Below, one piece after another: positions 4,479-28,287 of a DNA stretch of 32,000 nucleotides. The stretch comes from Wallemia ichthyophaga EXF-994 (lineage: Eukaryota; Fungi; Basidiomycota). Made by a program: the position numbers and the translations under genes. The notes under the pieces were generated by a model. The model did no database searches and was not told the DNA's origin. It worked only from the letters and a program-made list of their open reading frames with translations. Location of the stretch: the NCBI RefSeq assembly GCF_000400465.1, contig NW_008806279.1, forward strand, positions 84,097 to 116,096, read 5' to 3'. The stretch's first letter is position 1. The number at the start of each line of letters is the position of its first letter.

Positions 4479-5153
4479 ATGTCAGACATAAACATAAAGC
4501 GGGAAGCGATCTCTCAATCGTACAAACCATTTCACCACAAACACAAGCATTTCGACAGAGAGATCCTGGTGGAAGGAATGAGTATGAGAACTAAAGAAGA
4601 GAGTGTACTGAGGTACATGAGTCAATTTGGAGCAGTGGACACTCTATCGATATATTCCTCCAAACGCAGTCAAACGGCATTGCTCACATTAACAGATGCC
4701 GAGCATGCGCGACAAATTAGTATCAGAGATCACTGGATAGACAACAAGCGAGTAAATGCTAGACTGTATATACTTGCACTGGCCAGCGGTGGATGTCTCA
4801 CTGTCAATATCGACGGAATACCCCCATCCATCCCAGCTGAGGGGGTGGCAGAGGCGTTAAAATGTTTCGGAAGAGTTATCCACGCTAGCATCAAGCACAA
4901 CAGCAATATAGGCAGAGCGTCAAAGGGATTTGGTGTGTTTTGTTTCGATTGTCCAGACTCAGCTAAAGATGCTGCCAAAGAGGGTGAACTGATGTTGGAA
5001 GGACAGAAAGCGAAAGTAAGCTACATGGGAAGGACTCGCAATACGTTTGGGGCGGACAGTCGGGTGGGCGGGGTGAAGTTTTTGACAAGGATAAAAGTCG
5101 CGATAAATTGGAATATTTCATGTGGTTTGTGCGGCGTGTGGTGTGCGTTGTGA
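4479..5153 (+). CDS. Divergent two-RRM RNA-binding protein
   Basis: Two RRM-like units: ILVEGMS...FGAV...HWIDNKRVNA and VNIDGIP...FGRV...SKGFGVFCF (RNP1-like). Confidence 0.7.
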   Translation: MSDINIKREAISQSYKPFHHKHKHFDREILVEGMSMRTKEESVLRYMSQFGAVDTLSIYSSKRSQTALLTLTDAEHARQISIRDHWIDNKRVNARLYILALASGGCLTVNIDGIPPSIPAEGVAEALKCFGRVIHASIKHNSNIGRASKGFGVFCFDCPDSAKDAAKEGELMLEGQKAKVSYMGRTRNTFGADSRVGGVKFLTRIKVAINWNISCGLCGVWCAL

Positions 5154-5223
5154 ATAAGGACACGTCTAAAGTGGCGTAAGACATCCCAATTCCAGGAATA
5201 TCAACAAACACCTTGACATCGGC

Positions 5224-5922
5224 ATGTCATCATCGAGGAATATCGAAAGAATGAGCAAATGGAGCCGTAGGCTGCAGCGGGTACAGACGTATTCAGGGGT
5301 TGCTTTTGGTGGGTTCGCATTGCAGCACACGCTCCCAGCGCTGCTAGCGAGTGTAGGACAGCTGGAGCTGAGTGAGCAAGTGGTGATGATAGAGCGGGCA
5401 GTGTACCACTCGCCGTATGTGGAAGTGGTGTGGGTTATTGGATCAATATCTGTGCACGTGATCGCCGGTATCTTGCGGCGTGTAGTGTTGAAGAAGACAG
5501 CGAAAGAGAATAATACGCAACACACACTCACCACACAGCAGAAAGCAGGCTGGATGCTGACGCCACTCCTCACAACGCATTACCTCATCCACCGCTCAAT
5601 ACCCAGTTTGGATACACCGCCTATACGCTCACTTTCACCGTCCGAACTCTCTTACCCGCATTTCGTGGGCTATGCAGTACAAGCACTCACACCACGCGCT
5701 GTCATATCCGCTACTGCCCTCACCGCCCTCTCAACCCTCACCGTTTATCACAGCTTGGCGGGGCTATGGCGCGGGAAAAAGAACGCAAGGACAGCGCTGA
5801 GGTGCTCAGTCGTCAACGGCGTCAGCGTATTAGCTGCATTGGTTAATATGGGCAGAGCGTACTCCAGTGTGTCTTACTTAGAGCCTCGCTACGAAGCAGT
5901 GTATGGTTATTTGGGGTTGTAA
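5224..5922 (+). CDS. Mitochondrial membrane protein, DUF1691 / Mcp1-like
   Basis: Q.YSG..FGGF...H, VE...V.GS..VHV..GI.RR and HY..HR..P motifs with several hydrophobic helices. Confidence 0.7.
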   Translation: MSSSRNIERMSKWSRRLQRVQTYSGVAFGGFALQHTLPALLASVGQLELSEQVVMIERAVYHSPYVEVVWVIGSISVHVIAGILRRVVLKKTAKENNTQHTLTTQQKAGWMLTPLLTTHYLIHRSIPSLDTPPIRSLSPSELSYPHFVGYAVQALTPRAVISATALTALSTLTVYHSLAGLWRGKKNARTALRCSVVNGVSVLAALVNMGRAYSSVSYLEPRYEAVYGYLGL

Positions 5923-24911: not shown

Positions 24912-27341
24912 ATGTCATTTGGGAAAGAGAACAATTATGAGCTAGACGTTAACGGCGGGAACATGAGGGTGTGTGGGGAGTGCCATTAGGCTAATAAGTC
25001 ATCTTAATACGAATCCAGTCTCATTACAAGCCTCGTGTGTCATACTATTACAGTAAAGGGATTGGTAGGTAATGCTGGACGCATAAAGCGATTATTTACA
25101 GAGACAAGGCGACTATCATTATGGAGTTAGTGCTGCCAATTCTACTCTCTCAGCTACTCACAATCACTTCCAGGAGAAGCATCCGATGAAACCTCACCGC
25201 CTAGCGCTCACAAATAGCCTTGTTTTGGGTTACGGAATGCACAAGTACATGGAAATGTACGAGCCTCAGCGAGCTACAAGAGACGAGATATGCGAATTCC
25301 ACGATCAAGACTACATTGACTTCCTGTCTAGGTAAATTTTTCAATCTCGACGCAAAACGGTCCACTCACACAAAGCAGGCTATCCTCGCCGCCTACACCG
25401 ACAATGGTGAATCTTATGAAGCAATTTAACATGACGGACGATTGTCCTGCTTTTCCGAACCTCTACGACTTCTGTCAGCAGTATGCTGGTGCCAGTCTGT
25501 TAGGAGCGCGTCATATAACATCACAGCGCTCTGATATTGCCGTTAACTGGACTGGTGGTCTCCATCGTGGGTTTTTATGTCCAAACAGTGCTCATGGCTG
25601 ATTAGACCATAGATGCACACAAGGCTGAAGCTAGTGGATTTTGCTATGTGAATGATATAGTGCTGGCTATTCTCGAGCTGCTGAGGTTGGCTCAACTTGC
25701 CCAGGTTATAAAGCCCATCTAACAATCTACAGGTTCCACCCGCGGGTGCTATACATAGACATTGATATTCACCACGGTGACGGTGTGCAGGAGGCATTCT
25801 ACAATAGCAATCGCGTCATGACAGTATCGTTCCACAAATACACAGGTGACTTCTTCCCCGGCACTGGTGCACTCGATGAGACGGGCGAGGGCGCAGGCAA
25901 GCACTTCTCCCTTAATGTCCCACTCCAGGATGGAATAGATGACTATAGCTATGTAGCACTATTCAAAAACATCATGTCTTCCTGCATAGAATCATACAGA
26001 CCATCAGCAATTCTGCTCCAATGCGGAGCAGACTCACTTGGGTGTGATCGACTCGGAGCGTTCAACCTATCGATTCGCGCACACGGAGAGTGCGTACAAT
26101 ATATAAAGAGCTGGGGTATACCGCTGATGGTCGTCGGCGGGGGTGGGTATACGATAAGGAACGTATCGCGTTGCTGGGCGTACGAGACGTCAGTGTTGTT
26201 GGACATGGGAGTCAATGACACACTGCCGCAGACAAGTTACGATGAATACTTTGCTCCGGATTACGTCCTCCATCCTCCTATCGTCACTAAGGTCGATAAT
26301 CAGAACAGCAAAGCCGGCCTCGAAAGGTTGGTGAGAGGTTGCAGGGAGCAGCTAAGGTATCTTAACGGTGCACCGAGCGTACAGATGCAAGAGATTCCTC
26401 CGGATATCGCCCGCTTCATGGACGCGGCGGAGTTGGGAGTGGACGAAAGAGATGAATTGCAGTGGGGCCAGACTGCCGCGAGTGATACGAAACATCCTGA
26501 TAGTCACGCGTCTAATAATGAATTCTTTGATGATGAAGTCGATCAGGACGCGCTGGCGCTCGAGCAGGTGAGGGGTGGTGAGCGGATTAAGATGCAGATG
26601 CAGATGCAGAGGCAGGAAAATGAGGAAATGGATGAGATGATGGGTGGTATGGTGGATGGAGAAGAGAAGGAGGATGAGCAGATAGAGAAAGTGAGGAGAG
26701 ATGAAGAGATGGTGCAGGCAGATGAGGATAGTGGTGACAAGCAAGTTGAGCAGGTTGATCAAACGTCGGAATCACAGCAAGCACAGTCAGAGCAACCGCA
26801 ACAGCAACAGCAACAGCAACAATTAGATAGACTTATCGATCAAGCAGACACAACAAGAATTGAACATACGGAACAACCACAGCAAGCTGCACAGCCAGTT
26901 GTATCATTGGGGGAACAACCAGCCGTGCAAACAATGTCTCGACCAGTTTCAGACTGGGCTGCAGAACCAATGTCTCATACCATACCACAAACAGAACCAG
27001 AACCAGTTGCACAGATGTCTTCACAACCGGCGTTGCAACCAGCTGCACAGCCAATATCAAACTCTGTTGCCCAACCAATCACACAAATAGGTGCACAACC
27101 AGATGTACACTTGAATGCTAAGCCACCTTCCCAGCCAGTAATTGACGAAACCATGGAAGGTGTGACATCTGGACAGAATGGATCAATTGCGCCGTTGATG
27201 GACAAAGAATCGACGACATCTAGTCAAGTAAAATTAGAAGACGGAGGTGAGGGCGCTGCAACTAGCAATGCCAATAGCAATGCCACTAGTAATGCCACTA
27301 GTAATGCCAACGTGATAAAGGTTAAAACAGAACCAGCTTAA
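24912..27341 (+). CDS. HOS2: Class I histone deacetylase, Hos2-type, with long acidic/Q-rich C-terminal tail
   Basis: Seven exons including a 17-nt exon (25109-25125). [22 protein letters not shown]...[34 protein letters not shown]. Start codon assignment is tentative. Confidence 0.9.
27261..27308 (+). repeat. Coding 12-bp tandem repeat x4 (TSNA/NSNA)
   Basis: ACTAGCAATGCC AATAGCAATGCC ACTAGTAATGCC ACTAGTAATGCC at the Hos2 C-terminus. Confidence 0.85.
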
Positions 27342-27373: not shown

Positions 27374-28287
27374 ATGACGTCGACGCGACCAGTAGTCTTC
27401 TTTGATGTAGCTTTGGGGGAATCAGCGTTAGGAAGGATAAAGATGGAATTATTTAGTGATATTACGCCAAAGTTTGTCGATACTTATCCCAACGACTTGG
27501 TTAACATCGATATAAAGAACCGCAGAGAACTTTAGACAGCTTTGTACCGGTGAACAGAGGTGAGACAATGGAATTTTGTCGGTTATAGCTCACAAAGCTT
27601 ATAAGAGTGGGAAACGTACCACAGGGATACAAAAACAGCTCGTTTCATAGGTAGGATGATATAACAAGAATCCAAGGATATTCTAACCAGAGCTTAGAGT
27701 GTGAGTTATTCGTGATTAGCGGAGAATCGCTCACCTGAGCATACACCATACTAGTATAAAGGATTTTATGGTTCAATAAGTCTTGTGCTCATTGGATGAA
27801 AATTGGCCTGACAGACGCTGTAGAGGTGGAGATTTTATCAATGAGGATGGTACAGGCAGCTACAGTATCTATGGAGGTGCTAAATTCCAGGTGGGAAGAG
27901 TTTTGATCGGCAGAACACGCGCTATAACACGCACATAACCCACGCAGGACGAGAACTTTACAGTGAAGCACGACCAGCCAGGATTGTTGTCGATGGCAAA
28001 TTCAGGACCAAACACGAATGGATGTCAAGTGAGTTGAGAGTGATTTGTTCGTAAGCAACGACTGACCGTTATAGTTCTTCATAACGTGTAAACAGACGCC
28101 ATTCTTGGATGGGAAGCATACCGTGTTTGGCAAGGTGGTAGAGGGGATGCTCACGTTGCGTAAGATAGAGAATGTACAGACAGGTGCGAATAACAAACCA
28201 AAGTTACAAGTCAGAATAAAGCGTGGGTTTTGGTTTGATTTACATGAATATAATCTTACAAGGATTTTAGAATGTGGGGAGATGTAA
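27374..28287 (+). CDS. PPIH: Cyclophilin H (U4/U6 snRNP-associated peptidyl-prolyl isomerase), 173 aa, 9 exons
   Basis: Exons 27374-27471, 27518-27559, 27606-27650, 27698-27700, 27755-27775, 27824-27890, 27948-28028, 28075-28222, 28271-28287 sum to 522 nt. RPVVFFD...[12 protein letters not shown]...[21 protein letters not shown]...[17 protein letters not shown]...LRKIENV.TG.NNKPK...CGEM. Requires one AT-AG intron. Confidence 0.9.

Follow-up and report, generated by a model that had tools for sequence, protein, structure and literature searches.

A probable U2-type AT-AG intron in the cyclophilin H gene of Wallemia ichthyophaga and its apparent descent from an AT-AC intron conserved in the genus

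Wallemia ichthyophaga is an obligately halophilic basidiomycete. In a stretch of 32,000 nucleotides (nt) from the genome of strain EXF-994 (contig NW_008806279.1, in the following called the window), the gene for the spliceosomal cyclophilin H (PPIH, also SnuCyp-20) appears to be interrupted within a conserved glutamine codon by an intron that starts with AT and ends with AG. The question raised by this locus is whether an intron with such ends can be genuine and, if so, where it came from. The comparisons described here make it likely that it is a genuine U2-type intron, which was inherited in Wallemia as a rare type II AT-AC intron and became AT-AG in W. ichthyophaga by a C-to-G change at its last base that is fixed in every strain read. 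The gene and the elements of its fifth intron are as follows.

27374-28287, forward strand: cyclophilin H (PPIH/SnuCyp-20) gene from ATG to TAA, in a hand-built splice model with nine exons, eight introns and a product of 173 amino acids (aa).
27755-27775, forward strand: exon 5, 21 nt, T ATA AAG GAT TTT ATG GTT CA, coding for (V)IKDFMV and carrying bases one and two of the Gln70 codon.
27776-27823, forward strand: intron 5, AT...AG, 48 nt, phase 2 in the Gln70 codon, the sole excision that restores FMVQGGDF.
27776-27781, forward strand: donor ATAAGT, which departs from the U2 consensus GTAAGT only by its A at +1 and is kept in all four Wallemia lineages compared below.
27808-27812, forward strand: branch-site-like CTGAC (motif match only), in which the A at 27811 is the putative branch point and lies 12 nt from the final base of the intron.
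27822-27823, forward strand: 3′-terminal AG, in which the G at 27823 replaces, by alignment, the C of every other Wallemia lineage.
27824-27825, forward strand: exonic AG right after the 3′ splice site (tandem AGAG), supplying the third base of the Gln70 codon and the first base of the Gly71 codon.

Intron 5 reads ATAAGTCTTGTGCTCATTGGATGAAAATTGGCCTGACAGACGCTGTAG (27776-27823) and is followed by the exon sequence A GGT GGA GAT TTT. If it is left in place, exon 5 reads through into CAA TAA and meets an immediate stop. Every GT, GC or AT donor between 27756 and 27812 was paired with every AG or AC acceptor up to 27889, and 27776-27823 was the only tested pair that gave ...IKDFMVQGGDF.... The same exon junction has one equivalent notation, shifted by 1 nt, in which the intron ends are TA...GA. 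Among the rejected pairs, 27776-27814 (AT-AG) stays open but inserts RCR, and its AG lies just 3 nt past the putative branch A; 27776-27853 (AT-AC) stays open but removes ten residues of the cyclophilin core; 27771-27845 (GT-AG) stays open but removes VQGGDFINE; and 27776-27825 (AT-AG) shifts the frame. A microexon inside intron 5, earlier GT donors and AT-AC ends in W. ichthyophaga likewise lead to stops, frameshifts or the loss of core residues. An earlier note on this DNA had described a 48-nt AT...AG intron that splits the conserved Gln codon, with a GTAAGT donor altered to A at +1, a normal branch motif and a TAG end, and had stated that nearby GT donors and AT-AC ends fail. The sequence and the full enumeration of donors and acceptors agree with it on each of these points. 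The codon in question is that of Gln70, which we take to correspond to Q63 of CypA.

The identification of the gene as spliceosomal cyclophilin H, also proposed in that note, is confirmed by structure matches and by database names. The hand-spliced 173-aa product is colinear with human PPIH (SnuCyp-20, 1mzw_A; residues 4-173 against 9-177, E value 2.7e-79), and the alignment contains no internal gaps except for one residue. In the ranking of solved structures, human PPIH (268 bits) is placed before the next structure (235 bits) and CypA (184 bits). The product consists of a single cyclophilin-type peptidyl-prolyl isomerase domain (PF00160, 182.6 bits, residues 14-171), and its top database matches, from Wallemia and other fungi, bear the name PPIH (peptidyl-prolyl isomerase H). 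Human PPIH binds Prp4 (U4/U6-60K) and Prp18 and sits in the tri-snRNP, as represented by the PDB entries 1mzw, 5o9z and 6ahd. PPIH lies between a histone deacetylase (HDAC) gene and SEC31, and the order HDAC-PPIH-SEC31 is identical in every Wallemia locus that was fetched; the locus is therefore the orthologous one and no stray duplicate. Among the best 120 database matches there was no further PPIH-like protein of W. ichthyophaga.

The relatives show where the unusual base lies. PPIH was aligned between W. ichthyophaga, W. mellicola (10 assemblies, 6 haplotypes), W. hederae and the lineage of the Logan contig SRR25399871_5785. This 58-kb contig carries PPIH at about 4634-5536 in the same gene order; judged by this gene, its lineage stands nearest to W. 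ichthyophaga, with 85% identity of the coding sequence and a synonymous divergence (dS) of about 1.0. The nine-exon structure is common to all four lineages, as is a full-length open reading frame. All four carry CA/ATAAGT at the same codon position (the slash marks the splice junction), while the interiors of the introns are scrambled. The orthologous introns are 45-48 nt long, and within W. mellicola the intron is identical across the 10 assemblies. The conservation of the donor exceeds what chance would give, and TAAGT at +2 to +6 is found in none of the 28 GT or GC donors of the other PPIH introns in the four lineages. The differences within the 21-nt exon 5 are all synonymous.

The 3′ end tells a different story. 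The other three lineages all show ...TAC/AGG(T/C)GG at the 3′ splice site, which makes the intron AT-AC there; only W. ichthyophaga has ...TAG/AGGTGG. Branch-like motifs in the other lineages are CTAAC, CTCAT or CTAAT and lie 10-12 nt from the 3′ end. At 27823 the closest relative of W. ichthyophaga has C, which marks the G as derived. Judged from this alignment, the intron was AT-AC ancestrally in Wallemia, and the unusual feature of W. ichthyophaga is the last base of the intron and not the first. The alignment of the orthologous intron in related species had been proposed in the earlier note as a check, and its outcome is a conserved +1A donor paired with an AC 3′ end everywhere outside W. 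ichthyophaga.

One alternative is that 27776 or 27823 was miscalled or misassembled. The window is a single assembly, and around the site it is identical over 3,914 bases to KE007229.1. An exact look-up of the SEC31 open reading frame led to further annotated W. ichthyophaga assemblies, two of which were fetched. Both GCA_004918445.1 and GCA_004917865.1 differ from the window by single-nucleotide polymorphisms (SNPs) and indels (99.4-99.5% identity over 5.8 kb), yet they carry the identical intron, ATAAGT...GCTGTAG/AGGTGG, with the reading frame intact. Within PPIH, the two strains differ from EXF-994 by three SNPs, at 28220 (Thr instead of Lys168), 28265 (intronic) and 28278 (synonymous). The EXF-994 genome was sequenced at a coverage of more than 270x (PMC3849046). 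Across the genus the A at +1 is kept: it is present in the three W. ichthyophaga strains, the 10 W. mellicola assemblies, W. hederae and the SRR25399871 lineage, and the G at 27823 is found in 3/3 W. ichthyophaga strains read. An error is thus extremely improbable. By the same comparison, the C-to-G change at 27823 predates the divergence of the three strains. The two alternatives kept in the earlier note, a single-base assembly error and a recent null allele, are refuted by a +1A that occurs throughout the genus and a G27823 that is common to three strains.

The coding sequence on both sides of the intron has been strongly constrained. Between the Wallemia lineages the ratio of non-synonymous to synonymous divergence (dN/dS) is 0.016-0.022, with a dS of at least 1 and synonymous sites at or past saturation. 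The branch leading to W. ichthyophaga accumulated 37 synonymous and 5 conservative non-synonymous changes, and the sister branch (SRR25399871) 40 and 7. If the whole W. ichthyophaga branch had been neutral, about 141 non-synonymous changes would be expected; with 5 observed, at most about 5% of the branch can have been unconstrained. On the W. ichthyophaga branch, strong purifying selection has acted on the exons that are joined in frame only by this excision.

These numbers bear directly on the possibility that the C-to-G change at 27823 blocked ligation, that W. ichthyophaga lost or nearly lost cyclophilin H, and that the locus is a young, intact-looking pseudogene. Some fungi can do without PPIH, and no orthologue is known from S. 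cerevisiae. The combination of A(+1) with G(-1) fails in the second step in yeast and human mutants and is rescued only by C(-1) (PMC1557818; 10.1101/212811), and the look-ups in protein collections and the junction scan of metagenomes and metatranscriptomes described below gave no transcript support. However, the reading frame is intact in three strains, the count of 37 synonymous to 5 non-synonymous changes shows no excess over the sister lineage, and a loss of constraint would have to be confined to the last ~5% of a branch, while the C-to-G change is nonetheless older than the divergence of the three strains. The best 120 matches, moreover, include no other PPIH-like protein of this species. 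Given the substitution pattern, a pseudogene is unlikely.

To which spliceosome such an intron would belong can be read from its signals. Apart from position +1, the U2 donor consensus (/ATAAGT) is found in all four lineages, and /ATAAGT is the very strong consensus and hallmark of U2-type AT-AC introns (PMC5029451; also the selection rule of PMC1557818). Neither the U12 donor ATATCC or ATATCCTT nor the branch site TCCTTAAC occurs in any of the four lineages. The W. ichthyophaga donor ATAAGTCT does not match the U12 donor /RTATCCTT, and the U12 branch TCCTTRAY, which lies 10-15 nt and at most ~26 nt from the 3′ end, is absent from the intron in the window. In the SRR25399871 copy TCCTTATC is found about 31 nt from the 3′ end, and it is not conserved. 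The borders themselves are conserved in the orthologues, with the same position and the same AT start in four lineages whose synonymous sites are saturated. The suggestion that the site looks U2-type and not U12-type is upheld by the absence of ATATCC and TCCTTAAC and by the CTGAC 12 nt from the 3′ end.

A U12-type intron with AT-AG ends, as in animals, would nevertheless have one argument on its side, as AT-AG is the commonest noncanonical terminal pair of U12-type introns (20/66, PMC1557818). It is opposed by the donor, which is ATAAGT and not ATATCC, by the absence of TCCTTAAC from every lineage and by a pan-eukaryotic survey in which no convincing minor introns or minor spliceosomal RNAs were found in Basidiomycota/Dikarya (PMC10639083). 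The Rfam scan of the window gave no match, although 32 kb says little about the small nuclear RNAs of the whole genome; a tRNA scan of the window also returned nothing. U12-type ancestry from animals or early fungi was considered as well and rejected: this position lacks an intron in Mucor and in the coral Stylophora, and there is consequently no sign of an ancient minor intron. Taken together, a U12-type intron has next to no probability. A screen of the window by donor motif, branch motif and flanking open frames was non-discriminating, with AT-type candidates about as frequent as GT-type ones.

From its sequence signals, the Wallemia intron is best filed as a U2-type (type II) AT-AC intron. 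W. mellicola, W. hederae and SRR25399871 have the AT-AC ends that strictly define the class, whereas W. ichthyophaga has AT...AG in three strains, so its copy is a derivative of the type II class and not a strict member. Type II AT-AC introns are said to have been described by Wu and Krainer (1997) and Dietrich et al. (1997). The introns of human SCN4A/SCN5A and TAF2 resemble the Wallemia intron in the +1A of an otherwise perfect U2 donor and in their ordinary branch site. Long conservation in orthologues is a further shared property, and by sequence the copies of W. mellicola, W. hederae and SRR25399871 fit the class fully. The Wallemia intron differs in its basidiomycete host, in its length of 45-48 nt and in its position beside a 21-nt exon, and the W. 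ichthyophaga copy further in its AG end. The class is small: 24 U2-type AT-AC introns were counted among ~608,000 U2-type introns of five species, with none in C. elegans or Arabidopsis, and the only fungal cases mentioned there are hypothesized ones in xylanase genes (PMC1557818).

The terminal dinucleotides also invite comparison with the minor class. U12-type AT-AG introns share with the Wallemia intron both their ends and the one-base steps between AT-AC, AT-AG and GT-AG that are seen in orthologous introns. They differ in that the minor spliceosome tolerates varied 3′ ends, whereas the Wallemia intron has U2-type signals in a phylum with no reported minor spliceosome. Burge et al. (1998) reportedly regarded U12-type AT-AG introns as intermediates in subtype switching. 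Such introns have been proposed as intermediates of the switch from AT-AC to GT-AG (PMC1557818).

How the AT-AG form would be spliced can be outlined from known rules, although that it is spliced is here inferred from conservation. U1 and U6 would recognize the donor through its perfect +2 to +6 positions (TAAGT), which may offset the A at +1. Branching would occur at the A of CTGAC, followed by exon ligation at the first AG that is far enough from the branch (12 nt). Ligation would require G(-1) to dock on A(+1) in place of the compatible C(-1):A(+1) pair of the relatives. With this less favorable contact the second step would probably be less efficient, yet it may suffice to supply PPIH mRNA. 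A single substitution, A27776G, would turn the AT-AG form into a canonical GT-AG intron, and the form may be a tolerated intermediate of a switch from AT-AC to GT-AG.

Several points weigh against this outline. Suppression between the first and the last intron nucleotide is said to have been demonstrated in yeast and mammalian systems by Parker and Siliciano (1993), Chanfreau et al. (1994) and Scadden and Smith (1995). A G1-to-A mutation is rescued by a G(-1)-to-C mutation in yeast and human substrates (PMC1557818). In the P-complex structure, the 3′ splice site is recognized by non-Watson-Crick pairing between G(-1) and G(+1), and AU...AC could be tolerated (Wilkinson et al. 2017, 10.1101/212811). 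The AT-AC state of Wallemia is a natural counterpart of the engineered /AU...AC/ double mutant. Unlike these systems, W. ichthyophaga bears the “unsuppressed” A(+1)/G(-1) combination, for which a second-step block is predicted, in a strongly constrained gene; by the suppression and P-complex rules, efficient ligation would be unexpected. The exonic AG at 27824-27825 is a competitor only 2 nt downstream of the 3′ site, and its use would shift the frame. The correctly spliced PPIH of the four Wallemia lineages had no exact match in a collection of 15 billion proteins, and a degenerate pattern of the spliced junction hit 10 loci in JGI metagenome and metatranscriptome contigs, none of them from Wallemia and the best only 68% identical.

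The published transcriptome analysis of W. ichthyophaga used TopHat (PMC3849046), which reports only GT-AG junctions or, for long reads, also GC-AG and AT-AC (PMC4324775). Under these rules the published analysis could not have reported an AT-AG junction. In general, junction finders that are restricted to GT-AG, GC-AG and AT-AC would have discarded it.

The AT donor may instead be joined mainly to another 3′ site, AC 27852-27853, AG 27813-27814 or AG 27824-27825, so that an altered protein or a target of nonsense-mediated decay would be the main product. The sites are present and two of them keep the frame, and a yeast A(+1) donor prefers an AC 3′ end according to Chanfreau (1994), as it is cited in PMC10711555. 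But the product of 27853 loses part of the conserved cyclophilin core, 27814 lies just 3 nt from the putative branch A, and the residues encoded between 27824 and 27853 are strongly constrained in the W. ichthyophaga lineage too. Such a use of the donor is very unlikely.

RNA editing offers another way around the pairing rule. If A27776 were edited to inosine in the pre-mRNA, the spliceosome would see a GU-AG intron, and after the C-to-G change the edited intron would be fully canonical. Human AT-AG junctions that are turned into GT-AG by A-to-I editing are known, one of them U2-like (Parada et al. 2014, PMC4176328). These U2-like junctions share with the Wallemia intron the AT-AG ends and a U2-like consensus; they differ in that the Wallemia relatives are AT-AC, where editing would be harmful. 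In the three relatives it would give GU...AC, and because these ends are incompatible, editing cannot be the ancestral mechanism. No long duplex is evident around the site. Fungi are not known to have ADARs, and the ADAT-based mRNA editing of ascomycetes prefers a U before the edited A, where the preceding base here is an A. The probability left for editing is very slight.

The A at +1 by itself needs no relaxed rules, since AT-AC is a known compatible pair of first and last bases. The earlier suggestion of 5′ splice-site rules relaxed throughout this lineage gains no support, as the +1A is ancient, originally had its proper C partner, and stands beside seven other introns in W. ichthyophaga PPIH that are all ordinary GT-AG. 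The idea that PPIH could serve as a sensor of splicing fidelity or as part of a feedback loop has likewise found no support. If the idea holds at all, it would apply to the 3′ end of the intron. In a version shifted there, the major spliceosome of W. ichthyophaga would ligate A(+1)/G(-1) efficiently, with the first/last-nucleotide rule relaxed or compensated, and the splicing of PPIH could signal how stringent the second step is or act back on it; this we consider quite improbable. Prp18, a partner of human PPIH, is a second-step fidelity factor. In yeast it enforces the fidelity of 3′ splice-site choice (PMC10711555). The link between PPIH, Prp18 and 3′ splice-site fidelity is regarded as a coincidence and not as evidence.

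The origin of the AT start can be approached through more distant orthologues. Annotated orthologues were threaded onto their own loci, and the site in Tulasnella was read directly, as its deposited model is wrong at the microexon described below. Obba rivulosa (GT-AG), Calocera viscosa (GC-AG) and Tulasnella calospora (GT-AG) have an intron that interrupts the next codon in phase 1, CAA G/GT...AG/GN GG, with GC in place of GT in Calocera. At both ends it lies exactly 2 nt downstream of the Wallemia position, and the exonic AG 27824-27825 of W. ichthyophaga matches the position of its terminal AG. The acceptor is ACAG in two of the three (Obba and Calocera). There is no intron at the Gln/Gly position in Mrakia, Cryptococcus, Mucor and the coral Stylophora.

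These positions suggest a simple model. Deletion of the two G's on either side of the donor junction from an ancestral CAAG/GTAAGT...ACAG/GTGGA would yield CAATAAGT, which is the CA/ATAAGT of Wallemia. The new 3′ end would then have been the AC that stands 2 nt upstream of the former AG, and this AG would have turned exonic, its A completing CAA and its G opening GGT. By this combination of a 2-nt donor loss and AC use, mRNA and protein would have remained unchanged. One small deletion, together with the known preference of A(+1) for a C(-1) acceptor, would be enough to convert a GT-AG into an AT-AC intron. Recruitment of a nearby upstream AC after damage to the donor, as this model proposes, has its parallel in the activation of cryptic 3′ sites in the first/last-nucleotide suppression experiments. 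The comparison thus suggests that a 2-nt donor loss with use of the upstream AC produced the AT-AC intron of Wallemia. Against this model stands the fact that the direction of the 2-nt shift is not polarized; a sister position of Wallemiomycetes to the other classes is possible, and the intron is missing from Tremellomycetes.

Donor variation at these sites is not limited to Wallemia, since GC-AG introns are found both in W. hederae, as PPIH intron 2 (donor GCATGT), and in Calocera viscosa, as the orthologous Gln/Gly intron (locus 612-665, donor GCAGGC).

Natural U2-type AT-AC introns are extremely rare, and in the literature examined no firmly documented case was found in Dikarya; Wallemia, a basidiomycete with a compact genome, adds one that is conserved throughout the genus, together with a simple model for its origin in which a 2-nt donor loss occurs in one event and an upstream AC restores the frame. 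On the evidence of the aligned genomes, the W. ichthyophaga copy appears to be a real, species-wide, derived AT-AG intron of U2 type that arose from a conserved type II AT-AC intron. It pairs A(+1) with G(-1), a combination deemed ligation-defective by classical experiments and by the P-complex structure, yet the gene is strongly constrained and the intron is common to three strain assemblies. If it is spliced, it would be a natural substrate on which the strictness of first/last-nucleotide pairing can be studied, and it could be a living intermediate of the conversion from AT-AC to GT-AG in the major spliceosome.

The remaining elements of the gene, all placed by the hand-built splice model, are the following.

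27472-27517, forward strand: intron 1, GT-AG, 46 nt.
27560-27605, forward strand: intron 2, GT-AG, 46 nt.
27651-27697, forward strand: intron 3, GT-AG, 47 nt.
27698-27700, forward strand: 3-nt microexon AGT between introns 27651-27697 and 27701-27754, which completes Arg62 and starts Val63 of FHRVIKDF.
27701-27754, forward strand: intron 4, GT-AG, 54 nt.
27891-27947, forward strand: intron 6, GT-AG, 57 nt.
28029-28074, forward strand: intron 7, GT-AG, 46 nt.
28223-28270, forward strand: intron 8, GT-AG, 48 nt.

The microexon (AG/AGT/GT) is conserved in the four Wallemia lineages. Outside the genus, Cryptococcus gattii and Obba rivulosa have it in their annotation, and it can be seen in Tulasnella; Mrakia, Mucor and Stylophora are without it and have a single intron there. 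All deposited Wallemia PPIH models miss the microexon and are mis-spliced around exons 4-6. These are EOR01640.1 (158 aa), TIB75089.1 (182 aa), EIM23405.1 (164 aa), the model of W. hederae (198 aa) and those of the other W. ichthyophaga strains (200 aa, 1180-2108 of the fetched loci). The deposited 158-aa model of EXF-994 skips exon 5 and drops FFITCKQ, and its PF00160 score is 118.1 bits compared to 182.6 bits after re-splicing. Lys168 of EXF-994 (AAG, 28219-28221) is specific to this strain; in ...VRI(K/T)QCGEM, Thr (ACG) is found in the two other strains and in every other Wallemia lineage.

In the neighboring genes, the last exon of the upstream HDAC gene (25746-27341, forward strand) has at its end a long Q/E/N-rich low-complexity tail that diverges fast between Wallemia species, with 60% identity to SRR25399871_5785 and 49% to W. 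mellicola. A word-based protein search with this tail did not return the W. ichthyophaga and W. hederae proteins but only those of the sister lineage and W. mellicola. The models of SEC31 (28681 onwards in the window) vary among the W. ichthyophaga assemblies, with lengths of 1462, 1499, 1503 and 1507 aa besides partial ones, and this spread suggests further annotation inconsistencies in an intron-dense genome. In Obba rivulosa, PPIH is arranged head-to-head with DIM1 (locus 1-93), which is also a gene for a tri-snRNP protein, probably by coincidence.

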